A stretch of DNA of 64,000 bases, from assembly GCA_002269645.1 (NCBI GenBank), contig NIVC01000491.1, positions 310,001 through 374,000 on the forward strand. The letters run 5' to 3'. The DNA is from Macrostomum lignano (taxonomy: Eukaryota). Shown here piece by piece: positions 14,244 through 64,000 of this stretch. A program made the translations under genes and the position numbers. Positions within the stretch are counted from its first letter, which is position 1. Each line of letters begins with the position of its first letter. The notes under the pieces are model-generated. The model was not told the DNA's origin, did no database searches, and worked only from the letters and a program-made list of their open reading frames with translations.

Positions 14244-21716
<7,473 letters not shown>

Positions 21717-39790: not shown

Positions 39791-40539
39791 CTGAGACATG
39801 GATTATTGCACAACCTGAAAAAGTGATTGTTGCATTAGTGGAGGAAATATTTGCACTAGCTACTTGCTATCTAGTCGATGCTTGCTACCTAGGGGATGCT
39901 TTGCTATTGTATCTGGAGAGGGGAGAGTGCTTACTATTTGCCCTATTGGAATAAATGTTTGAAACCCGCGGACGTGCACTTTAGAAAAGAGTCAAACTAT
40001 TTTACTGCACTTTAGGATTATTAGAGATGTTCCATTTCGTTGAAATCAAAATTCGCTAACTTTCCAAAATTGAAATTGAAATTTTCCGAAATCAAAATTT
40101 TGAAAAACAAAGTTTACTGCTTATGCAAAATGAAATACATGCATATATAGCAGAAATTAGTTTATTTTTAGTGACTTTTTTAGACACTTCTAAAATTTTG
40201 ACTTCTAAATTTTTTTCAAAATTGAAATTTCCTCTTTAAAAATTCAAATTTTGGAAAATGAAATCAAAATCCAGCTGACCAATTTGTTGGCCAACCAAGG
40301 TAAGTCGCAAATTGCCTACCCAAATAAATATCCAAGTAGTACTAAGTAGATAATGAGGCATTTTACCTAAATAAAATAGTGATAGTTACTCTTGCTGTTT
40401 ACCCAAAGTTGCATGAATTTTGCTTTAGGGTTTCTTTTATATATGTAAGTTGCATTTTTGGCCAAAAACTATGTTGCATTTTTTGAAACAAAGTCATAGC
40501 CAACCAAATTTCAGTTGTGCATGAATGTTGCAATCTAGG

Positions 40540-40835
40540 GAAATGCTTGCTATCTGGGGGATGATTGCTATCTAAGGGATGCTTGCTATCTAAGGGATGC
40601 TTGCAATCTAGGGGGATGCTTGCTATCTGGGGGATGCTTGCTATCTGGGGGATACTTGCTATCTAGGGGATACTTGCTATCTGGGAGATGCTTACTATCT
40701 AAGATGTTTGCTATCTAGGGGATGCTTGCTATCTAGGAGGATGCTTGCTATCTGGGGGATGCTTCTGGGAGGATGCTTGCTATCTAAGAGGATGCTTGCT
40801 ATCTAGGAGGATGCTTGCTATCTGGGTGGATGCTT
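40540..40835. repeat. 17-18-bp minisatellite (GGGGATGCTTGCTATCT)
   Basis: Same monomer as 47690-48050 and 50630-51030. Confidence 0.9.
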
Positions 40836-41019
40836 GTTGTCTTGGGGATGTTTTGTATTTAGAGGGAATGTCTGTTAACTTTGTGAAAACTTTGTGTTGA
40901 TTGTCTTTCTATTAACTTTTGAAAAATAAGAAAGAGCTTCATGGCAACCATTTTTGTCCATGAGAATTATACTCAAATAGGCCTAAGGTGATTTATAAAA
41001 CTGAAGAATGAATTGGACT

Positions 41020-41680
41020 TTTTGAACTTTAGGTAGATAAAATAGTTGCAATTTCAATAAGATCATAATATTGTCTCTATAGAGGTTTTTGACGGTGCTG
41101 ATTTCAAATTTGAGCTTCATTTTTTTGTAGCTTAAAGCCAACCACTGGGATATGGGGAATGAGGGGTATTAGGATAGGGAGAATCTTCATGGGGATTGAT
41201 TTTATGTACCTAAACTTCAATAGAGGTATAGGGGTCTATTGAAGAATAGGTAGATAAATTCAGAGACTGAGGAGGGTGGGGGGGCATCTTGGGAGCGAGG
41301 ACAATTCTCAAGGGGGGGTGGCAAGTCTCAAAGGGAAGGCTAACAACTAAACAACTACCAACAACTAAGGCATGGGGAATGGGGGATGTTAGGGTGGGGA
41401 GAATCTTCATAGGGATTTATTTTACATACCTAAACTTCAATAAAGGCATGGAGGTCTATTGAAGATTAGATAGATAAATTTGGAGACTGAGGGGGTCTTG
41501 GGAGGGGGGGAGGCTAACAACTGTCAACAACTGCGGAATGGGGAATGTATGATTTTAGGGCAGGGAAAATTTTCATGGGGATTGATTTTACATACTTAAA
41601 CTTCAATAGAGGCATGGAGGTCTATTGAACTTTAGGTAGATAAATTCGGAGACTAAGGGGAGGGGTTCTTAGGGGGAAAA
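41020..41680. repeat. About 190-220-bp degenerate tandem repeat
   Basis: TAAACTTCAATARAGG..GGTCTATTGAA..TAGATAAATT..GAGACT recurs near 41210, 41430 and 41598. Confidence 0.7.
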
Positions 41681-42701
41681 TTGAAATAAAACTTAAATTA
41701 AAAATTCAACAAGTTATCAAAACACAACCATGGAGAAGAAATTATAATCCTATCAAAACTAATTGATATTAGCAGCTGCAGTTACCTTCAGAATGGAGAC
41801 AATGCAAATTAGTAGAAATTAGTACAGGTAAACAAGTAAATAATGTATGGCTAGTAGTAAACAACAATGAGAGAACAACAGCGAATAAAAAAGTGGGTGG
41901 TGAGGGGCGGGTGGCAAACTGTGAGTCAGCATTTTTTAAAAACAGTAAACAGATGCAGTACTCTCGCTACATTATAAAAATTTGAGTGAAGCAAAATTAG
42001 AATAGACACTATTTTTTCAGAGATAAAACTCAAATGTTCTAAATGTTTTTTTAGAATGAATTCATCAAATTTTGGAAAATATTTACATTAGAAAGCTATG
42101 ATTCTAAAAAAAGTTCAACTTTTAAACACACAATTCTCCAAAACTGCTTGGATCAAATTAACATTAGTTACATAGGAGATTAACAAATTGACCTACTCTT
42201 ACCTCTGAGGGTAATTTTTTTGCAGTTTTTTTGCTTTATTATCATTTTGGACAGCGTCTATGACTCTGGCGAAAGTTTCAGAAAAATCGGAAAATTGGAA
42301 GTATTTTATGTTTCTAAAGTTCAAGAAGGCCGGAATAAGTTCTTAAGTTAAGAAAATGTGCTTTTTAATTGTTTTTCATGAATAATTTTTGCTCTTTGCT
42401 TATTGCGCACCCCGAAGGAGGGCACTAGATTGCTAGACCTATCTTTATCAAATTTCGAAACTGCAACTATTTATCAACATGGCATAAACTTGAACTTGAT
42501 TGAAGTCCAAAAATAACTAAAAGTAAAACCATTCATTATTACTAAAAGATACTTACTCTTGTGTTGCTTGATTTGATGCCATAGTTGCTGGTAGAATGTT
42601 GAAAAAAACAATTTAAATTTTGACGACACTAATTTACAACCAAAGATACAAATTTTCAAGAAACAAATGGAAAACGAGGTACTGCAAATTAGCGTGTGGG
42701 C

Positions 42702-43516
42702 ACGTATTCATTTCCCGATTGACATTCAGATTCACATTCAAATTTTAACAAAGCCGCTGTAACTTTTCTTTACTTGAACGAAACGCTTTAAAATTTTACA
42801 AAAACTTTGACGCAATCAAGAAAAAAAACTACGTAAAATATCTCGGCATTTAAAAATAGACTGTAAAAATTATTCACATATAAAGTTTGTTCCTATCTCC
42901 TTAGTGTATTATTATGCAACTCAACAAAACGGCTTAAAATACACGCAGAGCTACGAAACTTTATTTTTCTCTTGACGCATGCGAGATGCGTTGGCAAGTC
43001 AAAAATCAGCACCCTAGCTTAAAGCCTGTACGAGTTATTCACCTGCAAACTGTGTTCCTATCTCCGTAGTGTATTTTGGGGGTCCAGCTTGACATTCGCT
43101 GACAGACACTTCTACTCAACGCAGAGCTACGAAACTTTATTTTTCTCTTGACGCACGCGAGATGCGTTGGCAAGTCAAAAATCAGCACCCTAGCTTAAAG
43201 CCTGTACGAGTTATTCACCTGCAAACTGTGTTCCTATCTCCGTAGTGTATTTTGGGGGTCCAGCTTGACATTCGCTGACAGACACTTCTACTCAACGCAG
43301 AGCTACGAAACTTTATTTTTCTCTTGACGCATGCGAGATGCGTTGGCAAGTCAAAAATCAGCACCCTAGCTTAAAGCCTGTACGAGTTATTCACCTGCAA
43401 ACTGTGTTCCTATCTCCGTAGTGTATTTTGGGGGTCCAGCTTGACATTCGCTGACAGACACTTCTACTCAACGCAGAGCTACGAAACTTTATATTTCTCT
43501 TGACGCATGCGAAATG
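42702..43516 (+). repeat. Left TIR: about 240-bp unique outer domain plus about 3.25 copies of a 176-bp unit
   Basis: CGCAGAGCTACGAAAC at 42944, 43120, 43296 and 43472. Confidence 0.95.
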
Positions 43517-46234
43517 CGCCGTCAGGTCTCAGTCGGAAGGCTTTAGAAAATACTAGTGCCCACGTCTATTTGAATTGTAAATTTCACAGCTTCTTCGTAC
43601 GTACGTGAATTTAAGCCATGGAAACGACGAAATTAATTCGGTCTGGATTTTAATTACAGGTTTTTATGACTGTTTTCTCTGAGAATAGTTTTTTTCTCTT
43701 TTTGAGATCGATAGTCCTTCAAATTTGACATTTGATCATTTTTATTGGATTGTTGGGCCAGTTTGACTCAGTATTGCATTTTATAATTTGTTAAAAACGA
43801 CACGGAAAGTCTTTTAGTATCGAATCGAATTTTACTCGCGTGGCTGTCGTGAAATTCAACAGGTGGGACACTATCTGTGAATTTAGTGTCTTTTATCACT
43901 GTTTTATATTTTTAACGTTTGTATTTATGTCTATATCGATTTTATTTTTGCTACTGCCACAGATTCATTCGTATTCGTTTGTAATGGATTTAATTACTGT
44001 TGTAGTAATCGTTTCTCTGTTCTTTTCGGGTGTCCTGGTTAACTAGCATATTAATTTGTGTAAATAGAACTGTATCCCAATAAAAGTACAGATAGTTTTT
44101 TTGTTTATTTGCTTTACTTGTTCAATTAATGTGTATAAATTAGTATAGCCTGCAAGCATTATAAGATGTAATCTTTTTAAACTTTATATATTTTACAGCT
44201 TTATCGAAATGAATGGATCTGAAAAATTTTCATAATGATTTGCAGATGCACTCTGGATAATATACGGGTATTTCACTGTTCTTTAAATTGAGAATTATTA
44301 CATATGATAGGTGAACATTTGAATGATTTAAATAGCTGAGTAAAGTGAACAAGTGAACAATATAATTAGAATTTTAAAGCAATATTTTAATCTTAATTAT
44401 TTTTAACTTAATTTCATGTCTATACGTATTAAAATTTAAGTAAATAAAAATGATTTCGGTTGTTACTCACAAGTATTGCTTTATTAAGACACACTTAACA
44501 AAGTTTAGATTCCTAATATATGTATATAAGAAATAAATCTGCATCTAGACACCAAAAATATTTTTATAACAATTTTTTTGGGGCAGGACTCCCACACTGA
44601 CTGTAATAGCGTAGTGTCGATTTGGCACAGAAGGGTTTAGCGCCCATTCGGCACCAAAAAGTTTTTGTTCAAGAATCTCTTGACCTCCCCTGGATGGTTC
44701 GATCTCCATATGTTTTTTTATTCACCAATGGTTTCAAATTTGAATTGAAATTTGAATTGCAGCAGAACAGTTAGCCTTTGCCTCTTGTTATAATTAAACA
44801 GATGGCGCTCGGATTCCAATGTCGCCTTCTACTGTACATTGTGGTGTTATTGATTGCCGCTAGTTCAGCAACCAAAACGAATGAGGTGAATTCTACTCTC
44901 AAGTTTGACGAATCGATAATTTTTTTGTTCTATCTTGATATTAAACGTTTAGAAAGTTGCATGTACGTGCACATACACAGAGTACAAAAAATGCACCGTT
45001 AATTTTTGTTCTACGCAAAGCTGCACTTATTTTTCCTAGACCTAAAGATTACCGCAGATCAGTTGCGTTCTTTTCCTACGTTACTAGGGAACTATCTATG
45101 CGCAACTCAATTCAAAATAGGAATATGCTTTGGAACCGACTGCGCCGAGCAGGAATTGAGTGGAATGAAGGGCGGTCCGGATCCCCCTCATTGATTGATT
45201 TTTCGTCTCCAAGACAAGATCAAGAGACAATAAACGGCAGTGAAATATCTGACACGGAATTACAAAACGAAATCGGTGCGACCGGCGGGGGCGCTGCTGG
45301 AAATGAAGATGAAGGCTCAACATCTGGAACCGAGGGTACAATTTGTTCGAGTAGCAGCCCAGTAGACAAGGATATATCTATTTCTGATGATGATAGCAAA
45401 GAGACAAGTTGTAGACTAGACCTGTTAAGATCAACTACCAATGAATGCGAAATTACTTTTGGCATCGAGGAAATACATAAAATCCAGTTTAGAGATGTCT
45501 CTCTGTGCGTTGGAAGCGATAGATCTGCTGTAAGAGTGGAATTTGACAAGAAGAAATTTAATGAATGTTTGGCATCAAAGTTTCGCTTATTGTCGACTTG
45601 CTGTCTAAGAATGACTGGATATAATAGAATCGGAGCTATTTGCAGTCGAAAAAGGGACTCGAAGTTTTGGACTGTGAAAGCAAGCTGCAAAATTGACGGG
45701 TGTCGTCGGCGCTATAGTTTCATAATGGATAGACCACCAATACTAAGCAATGGATTGCGATTTCGCATTGAGTTCAACGGAAATCCTATATACTAAAAAT
45801 GAGTTGTCTGTGGGTAGGTAGGTATGCGATAGATTTCAGAAAAAATGGCTCAACCGATTTTCTTCAAACTTGCACCATTTGATCAGAAATTTTCCTGGGA
45901 CGGTACATGCATCTTGGCTAAGAAATTTCTCAATTAAATATTCGAAAAACATGCTTTTTTGCAAAGGTCAAGCAGCTCTTTCGACCTGAAATGCATTGTA
46001 AAAATGCTAGAGAAAAAACTGACTGACTGAATTCCAATTGTGATAAAGATTACATCACAACCAGTTGAAAACAGTGCCGAACAAATGCACACAAAACTTG
46101 ATTTAAATTGCGTAACAATATTGCTAACTTAAATTGACACTGATACTGGCTGACTGAGAAATTGATTATGTCATAACTTTTTACTCTAACCGATTTGCTA
46201 TAAGAATTAAATTATAAGGGCCACAATTCAAGAC

Positions 46235-46318
46235 AAGAGATAGCATAGATGCGAACAGACTGGACTGCTAATGCTGCGACCTGGGTTCGAATCTTAGTAG
46301 TGCAAAAAGATTTTTTTA
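46235..46318 (+). promoter_or_regulatory. tRNA-Ser(GCT)-derived module in Helitron unit 1 (homologues at about 39075, 48660 and 51665)
   Basis: TAGCATAGATG (A-box-like), TGGACTGCTAAT (matches the tRNA-Ser GCT anticodon arm), T-arm CTGGG-TTCGAAT-CTTAG, then T7. The long variable arm is missing, so it is not a functional tRNA. Confidence 0.6.
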
Positions 46319-46359
46319 TTCAAAAACCTTAAAAACACAAAATGCTAAACACAAAAAAG

Positions 46360-47620
46360 CACAATGTCAAACATTCAAGAGCTACCATGTCAAACATATA
46401 CATGACTCCATGTCAAACATTGAAGAGCCACCATGTCGAACATAAAAGGGCCACCATGTCAAATATTAAAGAGCCACCATGTTAAACATTAAAGAGCCAC
46501 CAGGTCAAACATGAAAGTGCCACCATGTAAAACATTAAAGAGCCACCATGTCGAACATTTAAGAACCACCATGTCAAACATAAAATAGCCAACATGTGAA
46601 ACATATACGTGATTCCATGTAAAACATTAAAGAGCTACCATATCAGGCATATGCATGACTCCATGTCAAACATATAACGTGACTCCATGTTAGACAATTA
46701 AGAGCTACCGTTTCGAACATTAAAGAGTCAACATGTTAAAAATACAAGAGCATCCATGTCAAACATATACATGACTCCATGTCAAACATTGAAGAGACAC
46801 CATGTCGAACATAAAAGAGCCACCATGCAAAACAAAAAAGAGCCACCATGTCTAACATTAAAGAGCCACCATGTCAAACATATACATGACTCCATGTCAA
46901 ACATTAAAGAGACACTATGTCAAACATTAAAGAGCCACCATGTCGAACATTTAAGAGCCACCATGTCAAACATATACATGACTCCATGTCGAACATTACA
47001 GAGCCACCATGTCAAAGATAAAAGAGCCACCATGTCAAACATAAAAGAGCCACCATGTTCAATATTAAAGAGCCACCAGGTCAAACATGAAAGTTCCACC
47101 ATGTAAAACATTAACGAGCCACCATGTAAAACATATACGTAACTCCATGTCAAACATTGAAGCGACACCATGCCGAACATAAAAGAGCCACCATGTCGAA
47201 CATAAAAGAGCTACCATGTCAAACATTAAAGAGCCACCATGTCTAACATTAAAAAGCCACCATGTCCAACATTAAAGAGCCACCATGTCAAAAAGTAAAG
47301 AGCCACCTTTTTGAACATTAAAAAGCCACCATGTCAAACATAATAGAGCCACCATGTCAAACATAATAGAGCCACCATGTCAAACATAATAGAGCCACCA
47401 TGTCAAACATTAAAAAGCCACTTTGTCAAACATAGAAGAGCCCCCATGACAAACATAGAAGAGCCCCCATGTCAAACATAGAAGAGCCACCATGTCAGAC
47501 ATTGAAAAGCCACCGTATCAAACATAAAAGAGTTACCATGTACGAGCGTAGAACAAAAAAGAGCCACAATGTATAACATAAAAGAGCCACCCTGTTAAAC
47601 ATAAAAGATACACAATTTCA
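46360..47620. repeat. 23-bp satellite (AAACATTAAAGAGCCACCATGTC) in unit 1
   Basis: About 55 degenerate units. Confidence 0.9.
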
Positions 47621-47689
47621 AACGTAAAAGTAAGCGAATTTTAAAGGAGCCGCTATAATGCTAAGGAAATTGTCGCACTAGCTACTTAT

Positions 47690-48050
47690 TGTCTGGTGGA
47701 TGCTTACTATTTGGGGATGCTATCTATCTTGGGGATGCTTGCTATCTTGGGGATGCTTCTATCTGGGGGACGCTTGCTATCTGGGGATGCTTGCTATCCG
47801 GGGGATGCTTGCTATCTGGGGGATGCTTGCAATCTGGGGATGCTTGCTATCTGAGGGATGCTTGCTATCTGGGGGATGCTTGCTATCTTGGGGATGCTTG
47901 CTATCTGAGGGATGCTTGCTATCTGGGGGATGCTTGCTATCTGGGGGATGCTTGCTATCTGGGGGATGCTTGCTATCCGGGGGATGCTTGCTATCTGGGG
48001 GATGCTTGCTATCTGGGGGACGCTTGCTATCTGGGGGATGCTTGCGGTCT
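47690..48050. repeat. 17-18-bp GGGGATGCTTGCTATCT array in unit 1
   Basis: About 20 units just upstream of the 3' end. Confidence 0.9.
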
Positions 48051-48789
48051 TGGGATGATTTCTTTTTGCAATGCACTTCATTTGAGCAGTTTGTCTGTTG
48101 TCTTTTTGAAGGATTTTTGGCTGTTTTTTTGTTACTTGTAGAGAACAGAGATTCTATCCAGATGTCCCCCATCGGGGGGCGAAGATTGCTAGTTCCTATA
48201 TACTAAAAATGAGTTGTCTGTGGGTATGCGATAGATTTCAGAAAAATTGGCTCAACCGATTTTCTTCAAACTTGCACCATTCGATCAGAAATTTTCCTGG
48301 GACGGTACATGCATCTTGGCTAAGAAATTGCTCAATGTTAAAGGGATTAAATATTCGAAAAACATGCTTTTTTGCAAAGGTCACGCAAAATTTTCGACTT
48401 GAGATGCATTGTAAGAATGCTAGAGAAAAAACTGACTGACTGAATTCCGATTGTGATAAAGATTGCATCACAACAAGTAGAAAACAGTGCCGAAGAAATG
48501 CACACACGACATGATTTAGATTGCGTAACCATATTGCTAACTTGAAGTGAGACTGATACTGGCTGACTGAGAAATTGATTATGTCATAACTTTTTACTCC
48601 AATTGACTTGCTGTAAGAATTGAATTATAAGGGCCACAATTCATGTTCTCCAATTGAAAAGAGATAGCCCTGATGCGAACAGACTGGAATGCTAATATAG
48701 CGACCTGGGTTCGAATCTTAGTAGTGCAAAAAGATTTTTTTATTAAAACACCTTAAAAACACAACAAAACTGCTAAACATCAAAGAAGC

Positions 48790-50570
48790 GCAATGTCAAA
48801 CATAGAAGAGCCAACATATCGAACATAAAAGAGTTACCATGTCAAACATAGAAGAGCCACCATGTCAAACATAAAAGAGCCACCATTTCGAACATTAAAG
48901 AGCCACCATTTCGAACATTAACGAGCCACCATTTTGAACATTAAAGAGCCACCATGTCAAACAATTAGGAGCCACCATGTCAAACATTAAAGAGCCACCA
49001 TGTCGAACATAAAAGAGCCACCATGTCGAACATAAAAGAGCCACCATGTCAAACATATATGTGACTTTATGTCAAACATTAAAGAGCCACCATGTCGAAC
49101 GTTAAAGTGCCACCATGTGTAACATAAAAGAGCTACATCATGAAGAACATTAAAGAGCCACCATGTTAAACATAAATCTGGCATGATGTCAAACATTAAA
49201 GTGCCACCATATCGAACATTAAAGAGCCACCATGTCAAACATAAAAGAGCAACCATGTCGAACATTAAAGAGCCACCATGTCAAAAATTAAAGAGCCACT
49301 ACGTCAAACATTAAAGAGCCACCATGTCGAACATTAAAGAGCCACTATGTCAAACATTAAAGAGCCATCATGTCAAACATTAAAGAGCCACCACGTCAAA
49401 CATTAAAGAGCCACTATGTCAAACATTAAAGAGCCATCATGTCAAACATTAAAGAGCCACCACGTCAAACATTAAAGAGCCACCATGTCGAACATAAAAG
49501 AGCCACCATGTGAAACATACACGTGACTCAATCTCAAACAGTAAAGAGCCACTATGTCAAACATAAAATAACTACCATGTCAGACATAAAAGAGCCACCA
49601 TGTCAAATTTACAAAAGCCATCATGTCAAACATAAAACAGCCACATATACGTGACTTAATGTCAAACCTTAAGGAGCCACCATGTCAAACATTAAAGAGC
49701 CACCATGTCGAACATTAAAGAGCCACCATGTAAAATACAAAAGAGCTACCATGTAAAATATAAAAGAGCCATCATGTCAAACGTGTACGTGACTCAATGT
49801 CAAACATTAAAGAGCCACCATGTCGAACATTAAAGAGCCACCATGTCAAACATAAAAGAGTCACCATGCCAAACATAAAAGAGCCACCATTTTAAACATA
49901 TACGTGACTCCATGTCAAACATTAAAGCGCCATCATGTCAAACGTATACGTGACTCAATGTCAAACATTAAAGAGCCAAATGTCAAACAACTTAGCCACC
50001 ATGTCAAACAAAGAAGAGACACCATGTCAAACATAAAAGAGCCACCATGGCGAACATTAAAGAGCCACCATGTCAAACATAGAAGAGACACCATGTCAAA
50101 CATAAAGAGCCACCATGTAAAATATAAAAGAGCTACCATGTAAAATATAAAAGGGCCATCATGTCAAACATTTACGTGACTCAATGTCAAACATTAAAGA
50201 GCCACCATGTCGAACATTAAAGAGCCACCATGTTAAACATAAAAGAGCCACCATGCCAAACATAAAAGAGCCACCATGTCAAACATATACGTGACTCCAT
50301 GTCAAACATTAAAGCGCCATCATGTCAAACATATATGTGACTGCATGTCAAACATAAAAGAGCCACCATGTCAAACAACTAAGCCACCATGTCAAACAAA
50401 GAAGAGACACCATGTCAAACATAGAAGAGCCATCATGTCAAACATAACAGAGACAACATTTCAAACGTAAAAGGGCCGCCATGGTAAACATAGAAGAGCC
50501 ACTATGTCAACATTAAAGAGCCACCTTTTTAAACATAAAAGAGACACCGTTTCAAACATAAAAGAAGTTT
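48790..50570. repeat. 23-bp satellite in unit 2 (same monomer as unit 1)
   Basis: About 77 units. Confidence 0.9.
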
Positions 50571-50629
50571 CATGCCAAACAAAATTTAGCCACTATAAAT
50601 CTAAGGAAATTGTTGCACTAGCTACTTTC

Positions 50630-51030
50630 TCTGGTGGATGCTTGCTATTTAAGGATGGATACTTGCTATCAAGGGGATGCTTGCTATCGGAAGGATGCTT
50701 GCTACTGGGGTAACTTGCTATTGGGAGATGCTTGCTCTTGGGGGGTGGAGGGTACTTGCTATCTAAGAGGGGGCTGCTAGATATCTATAAGGTCTCTTTG
50801 TATCCAGGTTAATGCTTGCTATCCGGGGTTGCTTGCGGTCTGGGGGTTGCTTGCAGTCTGGGGGATGCTTACTATCTGGGGTCTGGGGGATGCTTGCTAT
50901 CTGGGGGATGCTTGCTATCTGGGGTTGCTTGCTATCGGGGAGATGCTTGCTATCTGGGGGATGCTTGCAGTCTGGAGGATTTCGCTATTTGGGGATCGAT
51001 GCTTGAATGCTTTCTGAGGATGCTTGCTGT
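50630..51030. repeat. 17-18-bp GGGGATGCTTGCTATCT array in unit 2
   Basis: Degenerate tandem units. Confidence 0.85.
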
Positions 51031-51794
51031 CTTGGGATGTTTTGTTTTTAGAGGGAATGTCTGTTGTTTTTTATGAAGGCTTTATTTTGCTGTCTATTTG
51101 TTATTTGTAAAGAACAAGGATCCTATCCAGATGTCCCCCATCGGGGGGCGAAGATTGCTAGTCCAATATACTAAAAATGGTCTGTCTGTGTCTATCTATC
51201 TATCTATGTGATCGATTAGAGAAAAAATGGCTGGACCGATTTTGTTCGAACTTGCACTGTTCGATCAGAAATTTTCCCGTGACTGTACATGCATCGTGGC
51301 TAAGAAATTGCTCGATGCTAAAGGCATTAAATATTCGAAAAACATGCTTTTTTGCAAAGGTCAAGCAAAGTTTTCGACTTGAAATGCATTGTAAGAATGC
51401 TAGAGAAAAAACTGACTGGTTGAATTCTGATTCTGAAATAGATTGCATCATAACTGAATTGTAACTCCGACTTGAATTGAAAATGCAGTTTGGAAGCGTA
51501 GCACCAGACTTGATTTAAATTGCGTAACCATGCATATTGTTAACTGATACTGACTGACTGAGAAATTGATTATGTCATAACTGCTTCGTGTGATTTACTC
51601 TATGCTTGGATTTTAAAGTGTTGAATTATATAAGTGCAAAATTTGATGTTATCAAAACGATGAGAGCTAGCCTAGAGGTGAACAAACTGAACTGCTAAAT
51701 GCAGCAACGATGGTTCGAATTTTCATAGAGTATAATTTTTTTTAATAAAAGCTTTTCAACGTCAGGAAAACTAAAAGACTTTTTAAAAAGAAGC

Positions 51795-54700
51795 GTCATG
51801 TAAAAATCATAGAAGCGTCATGTAAAAAATCATAGAAGCGTCATATAAACAATCATAGAAGCGTCATGTAAAAAATCATAGAAGCGTCATGTAAACAATC
51901 ATGGAAGCGTCATGTAAACAATCATAGAAGCGTCATGTAAAAAATTATAGAAGCGTCATGTAAAAAATCATAGAAGCGTCATGTAAAAAATCATAGAAGC
52001 GTCATGTAAACAATCATAGAAGCGTCATGTAAAAAATCATAGAAGCGTCATGTAAACAATCATAGAAGCGTCATGTAAACAATCATAGAAGCGTCATGTA
52101 AAAAATCATAGAAGCGTCATATAAAAATCATAGAAGCGTCATTTAAACAATCATAGAAGCGTCATGTAAAAAATCGTAGAAGCGTCATATAAAAATCATA
52201 GAAGCGTCATTTTAAAAATCATAGAAGCGTCATGTAAAAAATCATAAAAGCGTCAAATAAAAATCATAGAAGCGTCATTTAAAAAATCATAGAAGCGTCA
52301 ATATGTAAACAATCATAGAAGCGTCATGTAAAAAATCGTAGAAGCGTCATATAAAAATCATAGAAGCGCCATTTAAAAAATCATAGAAGCGTCATGTAAA
52401 AAATCATAAGAAGCGTCATGTAAACAATCATAGAAGCGTCATATAAAAATCATAGAAGCGTCATATAAAATATCATAGAAGCGTCATGTAAACAATCATA
52501 GAAGCGTCATGTAAACAATCATAGAAGCGTCATGTAAAAAATCATAGAAGCGTCATGTAAACAATCATGGAAGCGTCATGTAAACAATCATAGAAGCGTC
52601 ATGTAAACAATCATAGAAGCGTCATGTAAAAAATCGTAGAAGCGTCATATAAAAATCATAGAAGCGTCATTTTAAAAATCATAGAAGCGTCATGTAAAAA
52701 ATCATAAAAGCGTCAAATAAAAATCAAAGAAGCGTCATTTAAAAAATCATAGAAGCGTCAATATGTAAACAATCATAGAAGCGTCATGTAAAAAATCGTA
52801 GAAGCGTCATATAAAAATCATAGAAGCGCCATTTAAAAAATCATAGAAGCGTCATGTAAAAAATCATAAGAAGCGTCATGTAAACAATCATAGAAGCGTC
52901 ATATAAAAATCATAGAAGCGTCATATAAAAATATCATAGAAGCGTCATGTAAACAATCATAGAAGCGTCATTTAAAAAATCATAGAAGCGTCATGTAAAA
53001 AATCATAGAAGCGTCAAATAAAAATCATAGAAGCGTCATTTAAAAAATCATAGAAGCGTCAATATGTAAACAATCATAGAAGCGTCATGTAAAGAATCAT
53101 AGAAGCGTCATGTAAACAATCATAGAAGCGTCATGTAAACAATCATAGAAGCGTCATGTAAACAATCATAGAAGCGTCATGTAAACAATCATAGAAGCGT
53201 CATGTAAACAATCATAGAAGCGTCATATAAAATATCATAGAAGCGTCATGTAAACAATCATAGAAGCGTCATGTAAACAATCATAGAAGCGTCATGTAAA
53301 AAATCATAGAAGCGTCATGTAAAAAATCATAGAAGCGTCATGTAAACAATCATAGAAGCGTCATGTAAACAATCATAGAAGCGTCATGTTAACAATCATA
53401 GAAGCGTCATGTAAACAATCATAGAAGCGTCATGTAAACAATCATAGAAGCGTCATGTAAACAATCATAGAAGCGTCATTTAAAAAATCATAGAAGCGTC
53501 ATGTAAACAATCATAGAAGCGTCATGTAAAAAATCGTAGAAGCGTCATATTAAAATCATAGAAGCGTCATTTAAAAAGTCATAGAAGCGTCATGTAAACA
53601 ATCATAGAAACGTCATGTAAAAATCGTAGAAACGTCATATAAAAATCATAGAAGCGTCATGTAAAAAATCATAAAAGCGTCATTTAAAAAATCATAGAAG
53701 CGTCAATATGTAAACAATCATAGAAGCGTCATGTAAAAAATCGTAGAAGCGTCATATAAAAATAATAGAAGCGCCATTTAAAAAATCATAGAAGCGTCAT
53801 GTAAAAAATCATAAGAAGCGTCATGTAAACAATCATAGAAGCGTCATGTAAAAAATCGTAGAAGCGTCATATAAAAATCATAGAAGCGTTATTTAAAAAA
53901 AATCATAGAAGCGTCATATTAAAATCATAGAAGCGTCATTTAAAAAGTCATAGAAGCGTCATATAAAATCATAGAAGCGTCATATAAAATATCATAGAAG
54001 CGTCATGTAAAAATCATAGAAGCGTCATTTAAACAATCATAGAAGCGTCATATTAAAATCACAGAAGCGTCATTTAAAAAGTCATAGAAGCGTCATGTAA
54101 ACAATCATAGAAGCGTCATGTAAACAATCATAGAAGCGTCATATAAAATATCATAGAAGCGTCATGTAAACAATCATAGAAGCGTCATGTAAACAATCAT
54201 AGAAGCGTCATGTAAACAATCATAGAAGCGTCATGTAAACAATCATAGAAGCGTCATGTAAACAATCATAGAAGCGTCATGTAAACAATCATAGAAGCGT
54301 CATGTAAACAATCATAGAAGCGTCATTTAAAAAATCATAGAAGCGTCATGTAAACAATCATAGAAGCGTCATGTAAAAAATCGTAGAAGCGTCATATTAA
54401 AATCATAGAAGCGTCATTTAAAAAGTCATAGAAGCGTCATGTAAACAATCATAGAAACGTCATGTAAAAATCGTAGAAACGTCATATAAAAATCATAGAA
54501 GCGTCATTTAAAAAATCATAGAAGCGTCATTTAAAAAATCATAGAAGCGTCAATATGTAAACAATCATAGAAGCGTCATGTAAAAAATCGTAGAAGCGTC
54601 ATATAAAAATAATAGAAGCGCCATTTAAAAAATCATAGAAGCGTCATGTAAAAAATCATAGGAAGCGTCATGTAAACAATCATAGAAGCGTCATGTAAAA

Positions 54701-56200
54701 AATCGTAGAAGCGTCATATAAAAATCATAGAAGCGTTATTTAAAAAAATCATAGAAGCGTCATATTAAAATCATAGAAGCGTCATTTAAAAAGTCATAGA
54801 AGCGTCATATAAAATCATAGAAGCGTCATATAAAATATCATAGAAGCGTCATGTAAAAATCATAGAAGCGTCATGTAAACAATCATAGAAGCGTCATATT
54901 AAAATCACAGAAGCGTCATTTAAAAAGTCATAGAAGCGTCATGTAAACAATCATAGAAGCGTCATGTAAACAATCATAGAAGCGTCATGTAAACAATCAT
55001 AGAAGCGTCATGTAAACAATCATAGAAGCGTCATGTAAACAATCATAGAAGCGTCATGTAAAAAATCATAGAAGCGTCATGTAAAAAATCATAGAAGCGT
55101 CATGTAAACAATCATAGAAGCGTCATGTAAACAATCATAGAAGCGTCATGTAAACAATCATAGAAGCGTCATGTAAACAATCATAGAAGCGTCATGTAAA
55201 CAATCATAGAAGCGTCATGTAAACAATCATAGAAGCGTCATGTAAACAATCATAGAAGCGTCATGTAAACAATCATAGAAGCGTCATGTAAACAATCATA
55301 GAAGCGTCATGTAAAAAATCGTAGAAGCGTCATATTAAAATCATAGAAGCGTCATTTAAAAAGTCATAGAAGCGTCATGTAAACAATCATAGAAACGTCA
55401 TGTAAAAAATCGTAGAAACGTCATATAAAAATCATAGAAGCGTCATTTAAAAAATCATAGAAGCGTCATTTAAAAAATCATAGAAGCGTCAATATGTAAA
55501 CAATCATAGAAGCGTCATGTAAAAAATCGTAGAAGCGTCATATAAAAATAATAGAAGCGCCATTTAAAAAATCATAGAAGCGTCATGTAAAAAATCATAA
55601 GAAGCGTCATGTAAACAATCATAGAAGCGTCATGTAAAAAATCGTAGAAGCGCCATATAAAAATCATAGAAGCGTTATTTAAAAAAAATCATAGAAGCGT
55701 CATATTAAAATCATAGAAGCGTCATTTAAAAAGTCATAGAAGCGTCATATAAAATCATAGAAGCGTCATATAAAATATCATAGAAGCGTCATGTAAAAAT
55801 CATAGAAGCGTCATGTAAACAATCATAGAAGCGTCATATTAAAATCACAGAAGCGTCATTTAAAAAGTCATAGAAGCGTCATGTAAACAATCATAGAAGC
55901 GTCATGTAAAAAATCGTAGAAGCGTCATGTAAACAATCATAGAAGCGTCATGTAAAAAATCGTAGAAGCGTTATTTAAAAAAATCATAGAAGCGCCATTT
56001 AAAAAATCATAGAAGCGTCATGTAAACAATCATAGAAACGTCATGTAAACAATCATAGAAGCGTCATGTAAACAATCATAGAAGTGTCATGTAAACAATC
56101 ATAGAAGCGTCATATAAAAATCATAGAAGCGTCATGTAAAAAAATCATAGAAGCGTCATGTAAAAATCATACAAGCGTCAAGAAAAAATCATAGAAGCCT
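51795..56200. repeat. 23-bp satellite (AATCATAGAAGCGTCATGTAAAC), 4.4 kb, with higher-order structure
   Basis: About 190 units, with variant blocks recurring at sub-kb spacing. Confidence 0.97.
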
Positions 56201-57103
56201 CATTTAAAACTAATGAAAGTGTCATTTAAAAAATTAAGAAGCATCATGGTAGAATAAAAGAAGCGTCATGTCAGACATGAAGGGTGTCATGTAAAAATTA
56301 AATGAAGCTATCGTGCTGTGCTGGGGAGAATTACTAAGATGTCAAGGCTCTCAGAGAATAACTGAGATTACGGGGGGGGGGTTTCTGAGATGTCAAAGCA
56401 AAAGTCAGAAGCTACTTCAAAGTTCATGTACTTTACTCAATTTTTTTATTGCATTCTTCGTTGGCTCGCCACGGGGGGCGCTGATAGAAGAAGAGTCATG
56501 TAAAAAATAAAAGTAGCACTAAGTATACATAAAAGAAAAGTCATGTCGGAGTTAAAAGATTCATTTGGGAATTGCTACGATGTCAAAGCTTGGTGGAAAT
56601 CGTTATAGTGCTGTGATTCTTAAAGAAGGAATCACTAAAATGTCAAGGCTTAGGGGAGAAGAATTGCTGAGATTTCAAGGCTTTAGGTTGGGTTAAAGTT
56701 AGGTTTAGGTCAGGTTTGGGTTGAGGGTTATATTTTATCGGGTTTCAAGGTTAACAGGGGATTTTTTAGATTTCAAGGTTTATGGGGGCCATCGCTGACA
56801 TGTCAAGGCTTACGGGGGGAATAGATGAGATGTCAAGGCTCACGGGGGTATAAATGAGATTTCAAGGCTAAAGTCAGAAGCTACATGTAGTTTATTGAAA
56901 ACTTTTTATTACATTATTTGATGCCTCCTCAGGGGAGGGATCGCTGATAAAAAAAGCGTAACGTAAAAAATAAAAGAAGCTTCATGTCGAAGTTAAGAGA
57001 TTCATTTGGGAATCCCTACGATGTCGAGGCTTGCAGGGAATCGCTATAATGCTGTAGTAGTGCTATTATGACTCTTAGAGAGAATTACTGGAATTTCAAT
57101 GCT

Positions 57104-57177
57104 TTAGGGTTAGGTTAGGGTTAGGGTTAGGGTTAGGGTTAGGGTTAGGGTTAGGGTTAGGCTAGGGTTAGGGTTAG
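57104..57177 (+). repeat. Interstitial telomere-type (TTAGGG)n tract
   Basis: About 12 units, mostly perfect, inside Helitron unit 3. Confidence 0.95.
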
Positions 57178-60100
57178 AAGGTTGACAGATATTTTTAGAT
57201 TTCCAAGGCTTATTGGGGGCATTGCTGAGATGTCAAGGGGGGAAGTTGATATGTTAAAGCTTGTGGGGGGGGAATTACTGACATGTCAAGACTTACAAGG
57301 TTTGACAGGAGATTTTTTAAGATTTCAAGGATACATGTAGCTTATTAAAAAAACGTGTATTGCATTTCCTTGGCTCCCCAACGGGGGGCGTAGATTGCTA
57401 GTTTTAATCATACTATGGCAGAATGCAGTCGGTTCAGACGTACAACTAATGATGAATTCCAAAGATTTGCTGCTGAGTTGCGAGCATTTGGAGCTCGAGA
57501 AACACATCGGCGCAATCTGAACAATGAATCAAATAGAAACTATATACTCTCTAAGAACTTTGACTCATGCAAAACAAGAAATGTAATGCAAAACATCCAG
57601 TCAGCGATCAACCGAAATGAAAAGCTACATGCGATTCTAGAAGTTCAGATTGGGATCTTGAAAGACGTTTATTCTGGCATTTTTTGTCACCCATCACTAA
57701 CGGGAGTTATTCAGGAACGTTCGATGGATCCCTTTAGACTAACTCTTTTGTCGCATAATGAAGTACAACTCATAATTTCTATTATCAGGCGACAAAAACA
57801 TATTGTTCTGCATATAAATTCTACGGGATCCGTGACAAAAGAAGCGTCGATTTCAGGCGAAACGTATCTATATACAATTGTCACGACAGCAGACGATAAC
57901 AATAAGGCCGTGTCTGTTGCTAATTGTTTGACTAACAGTCACGACGTGACTTCGATTTCACATTTCTTGAAAATATTGCGACATTCAATTCTAAAACTAT
58001 CTGCAGCAGTCAGTGAATCATCCCATCTACCTATACTCTTCGTTTCAGACTTTTCCTGGGCACAGATTCATTCGTGTCTTGATTTTCATCACACCGACAT
58101 CTTGACTTATCTTAAGAACCAGTATTTATACTTTGAAAGAAGACAGCCGTCACCTTTTAAGTTTGGAATTTTCTTGTGCAGCAACCATCTCATTCATCAG
58201 ATATGTCGCACAACACAGCGCCTGAATATTGATAAGGGACCGAGAGAGCTGTTTGTGAAGATGTTTGTAGCAGTGATATATGCAAACTCCCAGGACGAAG
58301 CCGAGCGACTGATTCAGTCCATATTTAGAATATTTCTGGCACGTTCCCTTAGAAATGTAACCGAAGAGCTTCAAACTATTCAATACTGGCTTAATCACAG
58401 TGAAGAGATTTCAAACGATTATTGGACTTCCGAGCCAAAGACACGACCTGATGCAGCGTTTAACTCTATGAATGGGATATTTATGTCATCACCATACTAC
58501 CATTACTTTCAGACAATTAAGACCGAAATAAAAAATCAAGTGGGTTCCAACATTGATGAGCAATTTAATGATAATCCATTTTTTCATCCACGAATTGTTG
58601 AAATTTTCCTAACTCGGTACTTGTCGCTTTTGCCGCTCTGGTGTCTCTTTACGTGGTCGCATATTGTCAGTAAAAATAACAAATCCTTCTACTCGAACGC
58701 TCACGTTGAAAGTTGGTTCGGAAATATTAAAAGACGATTTAAGAAGACGAAGAGTGTCGTTGAATTTTTAATACCCTATATACAGATAATCCAAAATGCT
58801 GTCAATGAGAATCAATTGTATTCTACTGTTCCGAGAGCCTGTTTTTGGTCTAAGAAGAGGGAACCCATTAATGAGGAGAATGCAACCGAGATGTGGAAAA
58901 AGAATGGTCGCAAGAGACGTAGAGGAACGAAATTTGCAGGAACTGGAAACAATAGCTATTTTTCGAAAATTATTTCTGATACGATGCCATCAGCGGAGCG
59001 TCAGAAAACCACCAGTCGTGCAAGAACTGGAGTTCTTTTTCACCTGCGAGACATTAGATCGACCCCAATTTTAACGGACCACAAAAATTCTGTGAATGGC
59101 AATGGTTGGATGGACTACTCGGTTAGATTATAAAGCATTCTCATATATTATCTGTTACAAGTATATTCTAGACTGCGGTTACCATCAGGGGTGTCGAAAC
59201 CGAGGGGGCGGCATGAGTGGGCTGGACCCCCGACTGTTTAGCATGATCTTGCAAGTGCCTCTTCGAATTTTAAACAAAGTGTTGGCCGGTTTGGGGCTTT
59301 CGCTTTTCTGAGTCTTGGGAGCTTACAAGCTGAAGCGAGAGGGCACCGTTGCTATCCACACCCTTAGAGATCAATGTGCATGTTCCAAAATGTGTTTAAA
59401 ATCTGTAAATATTTTCCGATCAACCTGTTTCAGTCAGAGTCGATGATGTAGGACATTGTTTTGGTCAGAATTCATGCAGATGCATGAATATCTTTACGAA
59501 AGCAGCAGGGGAATAAATAATATTTCCCAAAAATTCAGGAAAAGCGAGTTAGAAGGGAGTATGCACTATTCAACTTTAAGTGAACCAGCCAAACTATCGA
59601 ACAGATTTTCCGGACCATGAAGAGCTTAGATGAATTGTAACCGCAGTCGAATGATACACGCCTTGACATTAAATATACAAATTATTTATCCATGTAGATC
59701 GTCTACGGATACTTAAGCGCTATTTCATCAGTATCTCCAAACTGCGTGGTTCTAATCGAGGGTGTCTTTCGTGACCTGTTGGATTCGTCTACAGCAGGCG
59801 TAACTGACGCACTGGCAGAAGTATTCAGCCAACTATTCATCGATAAGGTCAGTCTAGCAGAGCTAGTCCGACACTGTCATCTTACTATTGATTATGATGT
59901 CAACAGCCACGAGTAATACATGTGCTTACTCGTATCAATTCATATGTTTTTAGAATGTACAAGACATTCTCGTTCCAATATTTACCGGGAGTCATTTCTT
60001 TCTGCTTCACATCTGTACTCCATTGGGACTAATTTTTAAACTGGATTCATTGTCGAGGTTTAGTGCACCGATTGAAGAAGACTTTCAGAATGTTCTCCTG

Positions 60101-61916
60101 AAATGGAAGTGAGTATTCAATATGTCTTAATTAATATCTTAATAAAAATACGGTAACTTTACGGTTGAATTACTAATCTACAATTGCACTTGTTACATAA
60201 TACAATATTACATCCCAGTGCGTTGGTGCAATCGGATGCTTTACCGGAGGCCGTACTAGTTGCAATGGGACTTGAGGAAAGACGTATAGACGACTTGTTT
60301 CACGAAGGAGTAGTGCAGTGTACTCAGCAAGAAGACTCTATGAGCTGTGGCGTTTTTACTTGTCTTTATGGACGGAGCATCATGAAGAGTTTGAGCTTGC
60401 AATTTTCCTCCACTCCAGCGTTTCTGCGAAATTCACGAAAATACATTTGGACTACGATACAGAATTATGCTGTGACACCACAAAAGGTTGTGTGTCAACG
60501 CTGCCGATCGAGCGAGGCTGACGAGAACTCAAATTCGACGACAAAGACCACGGTTTGAATAATTGAAATCTTGTATTACTTTTTACTGTTTCTCTTTCCA
60601 GAAGCTTTCTAATAAAACAAATTAAATATGCATTTTAGTGTTCTTCGTGCCTGGGCAGTCATGAAGAAGGTACATGCAACATCATATGTGGCTCATCCAG
60701 TTTTTGCCACTGTTGCAGGTTGCTTTTCAATTTAAGTTGATAATCAACCAGAAGTACCAGCGTCGCATCCATGTACTGGCACTGATCATCTGAAAACAAT
60801 AGAGCTAACGTTTTGAGGTTCCCTCAAAGTACAATAATTTTTGTAGTCTAATGTACTAGTACGGGCGTATCTTCATCAGTTCCAGGATATTTCGTCCACC
60901 GGCATTTTGACAACTGGTATCGTACATGTACATCACGTAACCATGCAGACATTACGGCAACTGGACATTTTGGTTCAAGCTAAAATTTACTTCCAAGTGT
61001 AAATGCTTAAATCAGCTACAATTTGCTGAGTTGCCGTAATGTCTGGTTGACGAACTGCCGGTTGACGAAATGCTGGTTGACAAAATGTCCGGTCACCTCT
61101 TCATCATTCACAGAAAGAGGATCCACTGTTTAAAAAGTCTTCTGCATGGCTGCATGGTGTAGCAGACTCCCAATGAGTCCCGTTTTCGACTTCCGGGCTA
61201 CACCAGATGGCTCAAACAACTCCCGGTCATGAGGACCCCACTAAAGCAGCGTAAAAATGATGCGATGCATGCTCATTAAGGGATGTGTGGCAGGGGTCCG
61301 TACAGAAATTATTTTTAAGGCTCAGGTGGGTGACCCAGCTATATGACCAGAGCCGAATTTCTGAACTTTCTATCCCGTCATATGTTTCCCATTAGATGAA
61401 TTCCCTGAATCTTAGTCACTGTCCAGACTACAGAGGCGGAAAGCGTAGTAAATACTGTAATCTAATTTATATAATTTCGTGGATTTTATTCCTAGCTCAT
61501 GTACGAGTAACAGATTCGTTTTATGCCAGTGAGCAGGAATGAGCTAATTGAGCTAAAGGTTTCGAGGGCTTAAATTATTTACTTGCCATTTCAATAATAG
61601 AATTCTCGTCCAACTCTAAATAATTTCTTTCCTTCCTCTAGTACATGATGTTTTTTTTCTTCTACAAAATGCACTAAAAATCTCTTAGTACTTTTCTAAG
61701 CATGCAGATTAAGCCATACAGCGCAATATTTATTTATGCTTCTTGATGCATGATGTTTTTCTTTAAAAGTTTTTGTTCCGTTCATTGCTTTCCCGCTTTA
61801 AGTTACGCTTTGAAAAATGTTAATTTGTTTTGAAAATAAACAGTTGCTCAAGATATGAATTTTGACCCGTCCTAATTTTCCAGTTTTCCTTTTTAATATA
61901 GCAATATAGTGGTTCT

Positions 61917-63019
61917 CAGCGAATGTCAAGCTGGACCCCCAAAATACACTACGGAGATAGGAACACAGTTTGCAGGTGAATAACTCGTACAGGCTTTAAG
62001 CTAGGGTGCTGATTTTTGACTTGCCAACGCATCTCGCATGCGTCAAGAGAAAAATAAAGTTTCGTAGCTCTGCGTTGAGTAGAAGTGTCTGTCAGCGAAT
62101 GTCAAGCTGGACCCCCAAAATACACTACGGAGATAGGAACACAGTTTGCAGGTGAATAACTCGTACAGGCTTTAAGCTAGGGTGCTGATTTTTGACTTGC
62201 CAACGCATCTCGCGTGCGTCAAGAGAAAATAATGTTTTGTAGCTCTGCGTTGAGTAGAAGTGTCTGTCAGCGAATGTCAAGCTGGACCCCCAAAATACAC
62301 TACGGAGATAGGAACACAGTTTGCAGGTGAATAACTCGTACAGGCTTTAAGCTAGGGTGCTGATTTTTGACTTGCCAACGCATCTCGCATGCGTCAAGAG
62401 AAAAATAAAGTTTCGTAGCTCTGCGTTGAGTAGAAGTGTCTGTCAGCGAATGTCAAGCTGGACCCCCAAAATACACTACGGAGATAGGAACACAGTTTGC
62501 AGGTGAATAACTCGTACAGGCTTTAAGCTAGGGTGCTGATTTTTGACTTGCCAACGCATCTCGCATGCGTCAAGAGAAAAATAAAGTTTCGTAGCTCTGC
62601 GTTGAGTAGAAGTGTCTGTCAGCGAATGTCAAGCTGGACCCCCAAAATACACTACGGAGATAGGAACACAGTTTGCAGGTGAATAACTCGTACAGGCTTT
62701 AAGCTAGGGTGCTGATTTTTGACTTGCCAACGCATCTCGCATGCGTCAAGAGAAAAATAAAGTTTCGTAGCTCTGCGTGTATTTTAAGCCGTTTTGTTGA
62801 GTTGCATAATAATACACTAAGGAGATAGGAACAAACTTTATATGTGAATAATTTTTACAGTCTATTTTTAAATGCCGAGATATTTTACGTAGTTTTTTTT
62901 CTTGATTGCGTCAAAGTTTTTGTAAAATTTTAAAGCGTTTCGTTCAAGTAAAGAAAAGTTACAGCGGCTTTGTTAAAATTTGAATGTGAATCTGAATGTC
63001 AATCGGGAAATGAATACGT
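61917..63019 (-). repeat. Right TIR: about 4.9 copies of the 176-bp unit plus the outer domain
   Basis: Reverse complement of the left TIR, with more array copies. Confidence 0.95.
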
Positions 63020-64000
63020 CGTGTGGGCCGATTGCGAAAAATTCTTTTTTTAGAAATAAGCTCTGTTGTCAGAATAACAAAGTGAATAATATAACTAGGA
63101 GTTATTATTAAAGTTTAGGCACCATGAAGATCAAAGTGGTAATCTTAAAAAAATTCATTACGATAACACTGCTAGATTTAGATTTCATGACACTGAAAAG
63201 ATTAGCGTTATACTTCTATCACGCCAAAACTGCACCAAAATTTCACATTGGCAGAAAACTTCAAGCATTCAAACAAGGACGACTGAAGTGATCTATATAT
63301 TTAATTGATTAGTCCTTGTATTCAAATCTAGGAAACTTTCAGAAGATGTGAAATTTATAATCTTGAATAAAATTTTGCTTATTTGATTTTTGACACCGTC
63401 ATCGAAATTCAGATCTGGCGTGTGACGGTGTGGTTCGTAGAAGGCATGTATCATACGGTATTTCATTATTTCGCACACATATCGTACTACTTGTAATCCT
63501 TCATTCATTTTAACAATATTCTATACGTATTAATCGTACGCTTATGTTACTTTTGTACATGATCATAGTTATTTGTCGCCTCGTGTATTTTCACGTGCAT
63601 GCGCATTATTAGTATTTCATGCATATCGTGTTACTTCTCGTAGAGTAGTTTCTGTCTATGTACATGTATTTACTTTGTAATATTCTAGCACGATGTTTTA
63701 TCGATTTGTTTATTGTACATTGCACCTGGGGGGTTGTCTTATTAGGCTTTCTCTTGTTTTTGGGATTAGGCGATCTCAAGCTCAAAATCTCAAATTCTTG
63801 CCATTAAAGATATTTTGTGAGGGCAATTTCCTACTTATCAGTTGGTTTCCAAGACACTTCCTTTGCAATCTAGCCTTCTTTGATAGTGGCCAATTTGCTG
63901 GACGGCTTCCCCATTAGCTTCATTCATCTTAACTTAAGCTCCCACCATCCCAACCACAACATGCATGTAGTGCCAAAAATTCTGTTTGAGTCCCTTACCC

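Follow-up and report, generated by a model that had tools for sequence, protein, structure and literature searches.

What is the element with long inverted ends at positions 42702-63019 of this stretch of Macrostomum lignano DNA, and can its own gene still work? The window, by which we mean the whole stretch of 64,000 nucleotides (assembly GCA_002269645.1, contig NIVC01000491.1, positions 310,001 to 374,000 of the forward strand), had been described in a first-pass annotation made from the sequence alone. It proposed a near-intact, Foldback/NOF-like and Mutator-related transposon, in which a single spliced protein joins a transposase to an Ulp1-type (C48) protease and a PHD-like tail. It also suspected that this combination had not been described for an element with Foldback ends. 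We conclude with good, though not complete, confidence that this region represents a single copy of a DNA transposon of the Rehavkus/FB-NOF type, from the Mutator/IS256-related branch, and that the gene it carries is very probably non-functional. All positions below are those of the window.

We begin with the ends of the element, a DNA transposon of about 20 kb flanked by a perfect 9-bp target-site duplication (TSD). One copy of CGTGTGGGC abuts the left end (42693-42701) and the other abuts the right end (63020-63028). The chance of a 9-bp match is about 4e-6. The inverted ends measure at least 794 nt (42702-43495 against 62226-63019) and are 99% complementary, with one mismatch within the first 781 nt. 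Both terminal inverted repeats (TIRs) are modular. The left TIR (42702-43528, plus strand) starts with a unique terminal part of 241 bp (42702-42942), after which a 176-bp unit is repeated in tandem 3.3 times (42943-43518). The right TIR (61908-63019, minus strand) contains 4.9 copies of the same unit (61916-62778) and then the unique terminal part (62779-63019). The 176-bp repeats account for about 70% of each arm. The terminus has the sequence ACGTATTCATTTCCCGATTGACATTCAG, and its terminal 28-mer was found at the two element ends and nowhere else in the window. Since the TSD CGTGTGGGC abuts both ends of long inverted arms, the whole structure can be attributed to one transposition event. Furthermore, because the TSD is perfect and the TIR ends are nearly identical, we judge this copy to be a recent insertion. 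The TSD and the modular TIRs had both been read correctly in the first-pass annotation.

The two parts of the TIR are not independent in sequence. A 53-nt piece of the unique terminal part (42858-42910) is 81% similar to a stretch in every 176-bp unit (for example, 43023-43075). The 176-bp subrepeats may be derived from the TIR terminus and may carry extra putative transposase-binding sites. A similar arrangement is described for the foldback element Tetris, in which the subrepeats share a segment with the terminal part (PMC4079207). Another tandem repeat, with a 166-bp unit in 1.9 copies, lies about 1 kb upstream of the element (41350-41660).

The family of the element was assigned from its transposase core, a Rehavkus-type DDE domain on the plus strand (57402-59121), most of which is contained in a 572-codon open reading frame (ORF) at 57415-59133. 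An exact-sequence look-up of this 572-amino acid ORF returned no record, and a word-indexed protein search with the core found no match. Pfam reported no family for the ORF at E<=1, including no Mutator-like element (MULE), KDZ or integrase domain. An exhaustive HMMER search of 1.84 billion representatives yielded 544 relatives of the core at E<=1e-3, including 179 at E<=1e-10. For reference DDE domains, we took the six Rehavkus transposases (Repbase Rehavkus-1_TC, -3_TC, -1_HR, -2_NVi, -1_DY and Rehavkus1_AP) and the Drosophila NOF-FB protein from the supplement of Dupeyron et al. 2019 (PMC6446971), and compared the window core with them by phmmer. Rehavkus-1_TC was aligned over its whole length with 68.9 bits (query 132-439, target 1-307). 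The scores of Rehavkus-1_HR, Rehavkus-3_TC and Rehavkus-1_DY were 53.7, 34.5 and 27.9 bits, respectively, and that of the Drosophila NOF protein was 35.7 bits (query 93-440, NOF 294-631). Since the NOF core is almost identical in sequence to Rehavkus-1_DY in the published alignment, FB-NOF and Rehavkus form one group. The motifs h-h-h-D-A/S-T-G-S, V-T/S-D-F-S, L-C-x-x-H, P-L-W and S-N-A-x-V-E-N/S-W-F..K are common to Rehavkus and the relatives. In the window, the second catalytic Asp is encoded at 58048-58050, the catalytic Glu at 58708-58710 and the C/H motif at 58177-58188, all on the plus strand. The Foldback/NOF-like, Mutator-related label given initially is borne out by these alignments.

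The fold of the core was also modeled with AlphaFold2 from 67 aligned sequences. The model had a predicted local distance difference test score (pLDDT) of 81.8 and a predicted template modeling score (pTM) of 0.78. Its best match among solved folds was ISCth4, a transposase of the IS256 family (PDB 6xgx and 6xg8; E=1.5e-4, prob 0.98), with template modeling scores (TM-scores) of only 0.18-0.29; RAG1, Hermes, Transib and Mos1 came next. Despite the low TM-scores, the match is in keeping with a relationship to Mutator/IS256. Among bacterial families, IS256 is the one classically tied to Mutator. ISCth4 differs from the family described here in having no zinc finger, protease or PHD finger, and it is not matched at the sequence level: the whole-family profile found no transposase relative among the PDB sequences.

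Given that Ulp1 domains occur in other superfamilies as well, the element could be thought to belong to Zisupton/KDZ or Ginger1. The first-pass annotation named Ulp1 in Zisupton, and Ginger1 transposases carry Ulp1, OTU and PHD at their C-terminus (PMC2836005), which are the accessory modules (C48, OTU, PHD) found in the present family. However, Ginger1 has a Gypsy-integrase-like DDE core without homology to the core here, and different TSDs, and the TSD of Zisupton is 8 bp (PMC12730594) rather than 9 bp. In the core studied here, Pfam detects neither a KDZ nor an integrase domain; this core aligns with Rehavkus and NOF, and its nearest fold is of the IS256 type, not that of a retroviral integrase. 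We find this assignment scarcely credible and retain Rehavkus/FB-NOF.

The gene is split on the plus strand, with the 572-codon ORF followed by smaller pieces downstream. Four short interruptions, of 576, 55, 110 and 86 bp, each run from GT to AG, and all of them are in phase. The 576-bp intron is removed at the junction 59121/59698, which gives the WMDYS|IVYGYL already proposed for this gene. The 55-bp intron is removed at 59898/59954 (DYD|NVQ), before GSHF; the 110-bp intron is removed at 60108/60219, inside the C48 domain; and the last intron, of 86 bp (60553-60638), interrupts the Cys-rich tail. At every one of these four junctions, the spliced sequence aligns without gaps with an uninterrupted relative, P0003. 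For the second junction, an alternative splice before GSHF (GA|GTAATA to GGGAG|T) was considered and dropped, because DYD|NVQ fits the relatives and scores higher (32.4 bits to Pfam Peptidase_C48 vs. 20.9 bits with the alternative junction).

The Peptidase_C48 (Ulp1/SENP-like) domain extends over 59698-60552 on the plus strand, in the exons 59698-59898, 59954-60108 and 60219-60552. As claimed beforehand, it is complete in its catalytic residues: the His of GSHF (59993-59995), the Asp of LDSL (60044-60046), and the Gln (60328-60330) and Cys (60346-60348) of QQEDSMSCGVF. The score of the spliced region to PF02902 is well above the cut-off of 20.7 bits (32.4 bits, E=1e-7). In 16 aligned tails, from the window and 15 relatives, the catalytic His, oxyanion Gln and catalytic Cys are invariant, and the window keeps the Asp. 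A profile of these 16 tails, compared with PDB sequences, matched SENP1 over the whole catalytic domain (E=1.4e-32) and yeast Ulp1 (2.3e-29). Matches to SENP2, SENP3 and SENP5 were also obtained, and a weaker one to SENP8, which is NEDD8-specific (1e-13). Because the domain is closest to the SUMO-specific SENP1, SENP2 and Ulp1 and less close to the NEDD8-specific SENP8, deSUMOylation is the most likely predicted activity. The last 60 positions of the profile matched the PHD fingers of DPF3 (5e-9) and KAT6A (1e-7). At the family level, the tail is a predicted C48 protease followed by a predicted PHD finger.

The tail of this copy occupies the position of the relatives' PHD finger. It extends over 60493-60740 on the plus strand, spans the last intron and ends with the last exon (60639-60740; stop codon 60738-60740). 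It contains eight Cys/His with the atypical spacing C-x2-C-x18-C-x2-C-x3-H-x4-C-x9-C-x2-C. Pfam found no PHD match in it. Against the profile of the relatives' PHD fingers it scored -4.6 bits, whereas shuffled tails reached up to 8.6 bits. The Cys-rich series noted initially (CQRC..CSSC..H..C..CHCC) is therefore present, but no PHD score accompanies it in this copy, and the term 'PHD-like' is fair as a positional label and not as a domain call.

Could the protease be foreign to the transposase? The C48/Cys-rich part might be a captured host gene fragment, in Pack-MULE or KI-MULE style, and no part of the transposase protein. Plant MULEs do carry captured ULP-like genes (cited in PMC2836005), and the protease in the window lies behind a 576-bp intron. 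In the plant elements, ULP is mostly a separate captured gene. The DDE core and the C48(-PHD) tail, however, form one uninterrupted ORF in relatives P0002, P0003, P0004, P0065, P0093 and others. The WMDYS|IVYGYL junction is moreover gap-free against P0003. Capture is very improbable, and we treat core, protease and tail as parts of one protein.

Upstream of the core, an N-terminal coding segment of about 230 amino acids starts at the ATG at 45098 and runs to 45790 on the plus strand, within an ORF at 44957-45796. In over 20 relatives, the stretch that directly precedes the DDE core matches the last 80 amino acids of this segment. The pattern C..S-R-K..C-x4-C..G-x3-H is common to 27 aligned sequences (the window and 26 relatives); the window Cys codons lie at 45602-45604, 45686-45688 and 45701-45703. 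The model of the segment (pLDDT 81.8) shows a helix and then a four-stranded sheet. Its top PDB matches were WRKY domains, with target-normalized TM-scores of 0.64-0.69, a root-mean-square deviation of about 3.2 Å and E about 1. The model is no more than suggestive of a WRKY-like zinc finger. Mutator-like transposases carry a WRKY-GCM1-type finger at their N-terminus.

Between this segment and the core lies a nested block of 11,618 bp (45791-57408) made of a different repeat family. It includes three modules, each composed of a unit of ~420-560 bp and two satellites (23 bp and 18 bp), and further repeats besides; TACTA borders it on the left, CATACTA on the right. The N-terminal frame matches the relatives residue by residue up to the nearly invariant His. 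At this position, the window has Tyr (TAC, 45791-45793), and TAA follows. The closest relative, at locus L001 (48% identical in the core), reads through the insertion point (..VGTFDHSRSPSSCFRRTT). Joining 45790 to 57409 creates an uninterrupted frame of 802 codons, with EFNGNPIHTMAECSRFRRTT at the join, which is collinear with L001 and in which G-x3-H and its spacing to FRRTT are restored. An earlier empty-site model, with a duplicated AATC..ATACTA and the junction GNH, was dropped in favor of 45790/57409, which keeps the nearly invariant G-x3-H. The 11.6-kb block is a nested insertion of another repeat family and not an ordinary intron.

The same kind of repeat occurs outside the element. At 38591-40867, we found a unit of ~560 bp (38591-39151) and two satellites, one of 24 bp (39177-39838) and one of 18 bp with the sequence ATGCTTGCTATCTGGGGG (40543-40850). 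This module is 72-87% identical to the three modules inside the element (45812-51756), and represents a separate, satellite-carrying repeat family. A (TTAGGG)12 run, about 12 copies of a telomere-type repeat, is located at 57104-57177, inside the nested block and ~230 bp from its right end. Such a run speaks against an insect as host.

A further lesion affects the catalytic core. The first catalytic position of the window core is Asn (AAT, 57817-57819), whereas it is Asp in 122 of the 127 relatives in which the motif was located. Asn at this position was otherwise seen only in P0002 (residue 445) and P0003 (residue 202) among 150 relatives examined. The second Asp and the Glu are kept, and the complete D, D, E triad is absent. 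Because the first Asp is Asn, the 11.6-kb block sits at the zinc-finger His codon and the PHD-like tail is degenerate, the gene of this copy is, as read from its sequence, very probably not functional. In view of these three lesions, the claim that the element is near-intact is not supported.

Several observations weigh against our reading. First, a pair of splice sites (GA|GTTCAA at 45771 and TAG|T at 57402) would formally allow removal of the 11.6-kb block, with RFRIDFNH as the result. With this fifth GT..AG junction, also in phase, a conceptual product of 1061 amino acids without an internal stop can be assembled, close to the single protein of about 1050 amino acids proposed initially. Some 1060 conceptual codons are free of stops and frameshifts, so the decay is slight. 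Second, the catalytic residues of C48 are intact. Third, Asn may be a trait of the lineage and not a lesion, as P0002 and P0003 are the most similar full-length relatives; the Asn of the window, P0002 and P0003 reflects either three independent lesions or an Asn-bearing sub-lineage. Finally, the near-identity of the TIRs could result from conversion between the arms and not from youth, and the E-values of the WRKY fold matches are non-significant.

Taken at their strongest, the five in-phase junctions, the stop-free conceptual coding sequence, the intact C48 residues, the almost identical TIRs and the perfect TSD would describe a near-intact autonomous element, with a six-exon gene and an 11.6-kb first intron, that makes an active 1061-amino acid transposase-protease-PHD protein. 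We consider this unlikely. The product spliced at 45771/57402 has no nearly invariant G-x3-H segment, whereas the unspliced frame fits the relatives up to the Tyr and the stop. The supposed intron consists of a repeat family that is also present outside the element, and removing the block restores the ancestral frame. In addition, the first catalytic Asp is Asn. We therefore keep to the reading of a damaged Rehavkus/FB-NOF-type copy.

We next consider how far the architecture extends among the relatives. P0002 (1212 amino acids), P0003 (1010 amino acids) and P0004 (995 amino acids) are uninterrupted ORFs with the order zinc finger, DDE core, C48 and PHD, and P0065 and P0093 have the same layout. 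Of 47 long relatives, Pfam assigned Peptidase_C48 to 13, with a best E of 9e-22, PHD to six, OTU to four and UCH to one; the OTU domain of P0121 scored 28.9 bits. A local profile search found C48-like tails in about 20 of the best 150 relatives, a count based on rounds 1-3 of an iterative search and on a cleaner re-run, with a drifted fourth round left out. The predicted transposase-C48 fusion is a family trait and not peculiar to this locus.

Other C-termini in the group were inspected as well. The C-terminus of NOF-FB (~780-1056) contains, by eye only, a USP-like Cys-box (KNTCPFDSL) and His-box (GHYIAY..W..HND), and it resembles the C-terminus of relative P0035 (925-1020). A USP domain call for this part of NOF was rejected, with no match in Pfam or among PDB sequences. 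Relative P0021 (999-1021) ends in the start of a UCH domain, below threshold (16.7 bits vs. a cut-off of 23.9).

The genomic surroundings of the relatives gave limited views of element ends. At locus L002, which encodes P0002, two arrays of a 186-bp tandem repeat (~15 copies, 14208-17143) lie downstream of the ORF and resemble the 'minisatellite before 3' TIR' of Rehavkus. No TIRs were seen at L002 in the 20 kb available. Loci L002 and L005, both encoding P0002, are collinear and 99.3-99.5% identical including their flanks, without TIRs in the available sequence; both may represent a single locus sampled twice, and nothing about copy number can be read from them. The relatives' loci L003 and L004 are too short to show element ends. 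A search of metagenome contigs for other copies, or for relatives with ends, gave none with a single protein as the query and three short contigs with a small alignment. Two relatives, P0013 and P0015 (NCBI MES9880808.1 and MES9883988.1), are deposited under a bacterial metagenome-assembled genome, 'Sedimenticola sp.'; these contigs are probably eukaryotic host DNA that was wrongly binned.

The two P0002 loci without TIRs in the available sequence, and the Asn that P0002 and P0003 share with the window, could be taken as signs of domestication, with a host gene lying between inverted repeats by chance. A perfect 9-bp TSD that abuts inverted ends of at least 794 nt is, however, the signature of transposition, and a nested repeat interrupts the gene. 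A domesticated gene is extremely improbable here, and a transposon copy remains our interpretation.

We then asked whether the combination is new. Rehavkus elements are described as having TSDs of 9 bp, TIRs that measure 26-412 bp in the references listed, and also a minisatellite and a PHD finger (PMC6446971), and they have been called 'foldback DNA transposons' whose inverted termini contain tandem repeats (bioRxiv 10.1101/2024.12.02.626372). Their published hosts are insects and an annelid. The element studied here resembles them in its homologous DDE core, 9-bp TSD, repeat-bearing long TIRs, family-level PHD finger and large size (Rehavkus-3_TC has 18.5 kb). It differs in the length of its TIRs (at least 794 nt vs. 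26-412 bp), in its nested 11.6-kb repeat block and in the Asn at the first catalytic position, and the descriptions of Rehavkus cited here give a PHD finger and a minisatellite with no mention of C48. The likeness to Drosophila FB-NOF consists in the homologous DDE core and in long inverted ends made largely of tandem repeats; unlike the protein here, the NOF protein has no C48 domain. Drosophila FB makes 9-bp TSDs, and its arms are built of repeat units much shorter than 176 bp.

Fusions of this kind were published in 2010, when Bao, Kapitonov and Jurka reported Mutator transposases of hydra and lancelet with Ulp1 and PHD (PMC2836005). By their description, these have the same features as the present family: a Mutator-related transposase fused to an Ulp1 catalytic domain and a PHD finger. 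The same paper already proposes a role of such proteases in transposition or repair. In the literature, with Repbase Reports outside the scope, we found no paper naming C48 on Rehavkus or NOF specifically. Given that Rehavkus is catalogued and that animal Mutator and Ginger1 transposases with Ulp1 and PHD have been on record since 2010, the novelty suspected for the combination with Foldback ends has to be given up. The element is a new member of the catalogued Rehavkus/FB-NOF group, with a domain combination already published. The copy in the window contributes little of its own, being damaged and having a combination that the literature already contains.

The rest of the window was surveyed more briefly. 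An Rfam search gave no match. Exons of a VCP/p97 (CDC48) AAA-ATPase gene, a fragment of which reaches at best 87% identity to database proteins of marine eukaryotes, are located at 16661-20937 on the minus strand. Its introns are full of microsatellite-like, low-complexity repeats, which give rise to long spurious ORFs on both strands. Long multi-frame ORFs at 3222-4086, 8917-9796 and 10603-11247 come from tandem low-complexity repeats (Thr/Pro-rich and Ser/Leu-rich) and are probably not genes. Pfam searches of neighboring ORFs gave weak PAN and glue-like matches and nothing more; the weak PAN-domain match is in the ORF at 8268-8750, and the ORF at 9682-10167 is a Gly-rich stretch.

A mechanism can be proposed for the family. 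Its single protein combines an N-terminal, putatively WRKY-like zinc finger, a DDE (RNase-H-like) core, a C48 protease and usually a PHD finger. By analogy with MULE and Foldback elements, binding to the repeated sites in the repeat-bearing ends would fall to the zinc finger and the core, and the DDE core would excise the element and integrate it through a cut staggered by 9 bp. For the protease and the PHD finger, the target may be chromatin silencing that depends on SUMO, or repair, where transposition takes place. Candidate substrates of the protease are a silencing factor, a repair factor and the transposase itself. The copy in the window would need an intact family member and would presumably be moved in trans.

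For the family, this element provides a clean, fully delimited example of the Rehavkus/Foldback type, with its TSD, modular TIRs, putative WRKY-like finger, DDE core and C48 domain. Through it, several hundred ORFs without annotation, from assemblies of metagenomes and read archives, come together in one family with Rehavkus and the Drosophila NOF protein. Seen more widely, unrelated superfamilies (MULE/Rehavkus, Ginger1 and Helitron) repeatedly acquire SUMO or ubiquitin proteases. We tentatively raise a broader idea, which we think less probable than not by a clear distance: the whole Rehavkus/FB-NOF lineage may carry interchangeable C48, OTU and USP/UCH proteases, in most cases together with a PHD finger, and this conserved accessory module may help repair or work against silencing that depends on SUMO or ubiquitin. 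We found no account of such a pattern for Rehavkus/NOF in particular. If this idea were true, the Asn variants (the window copy, P0002 and P0003) would not be dead copies but would form a sub-lineage that propagates or has a regulatory role. To examine directly why such proteases are acquired, the uninterrupted single-ORF relatives P0003, P0004, P0065 and P0093 would be well suited.

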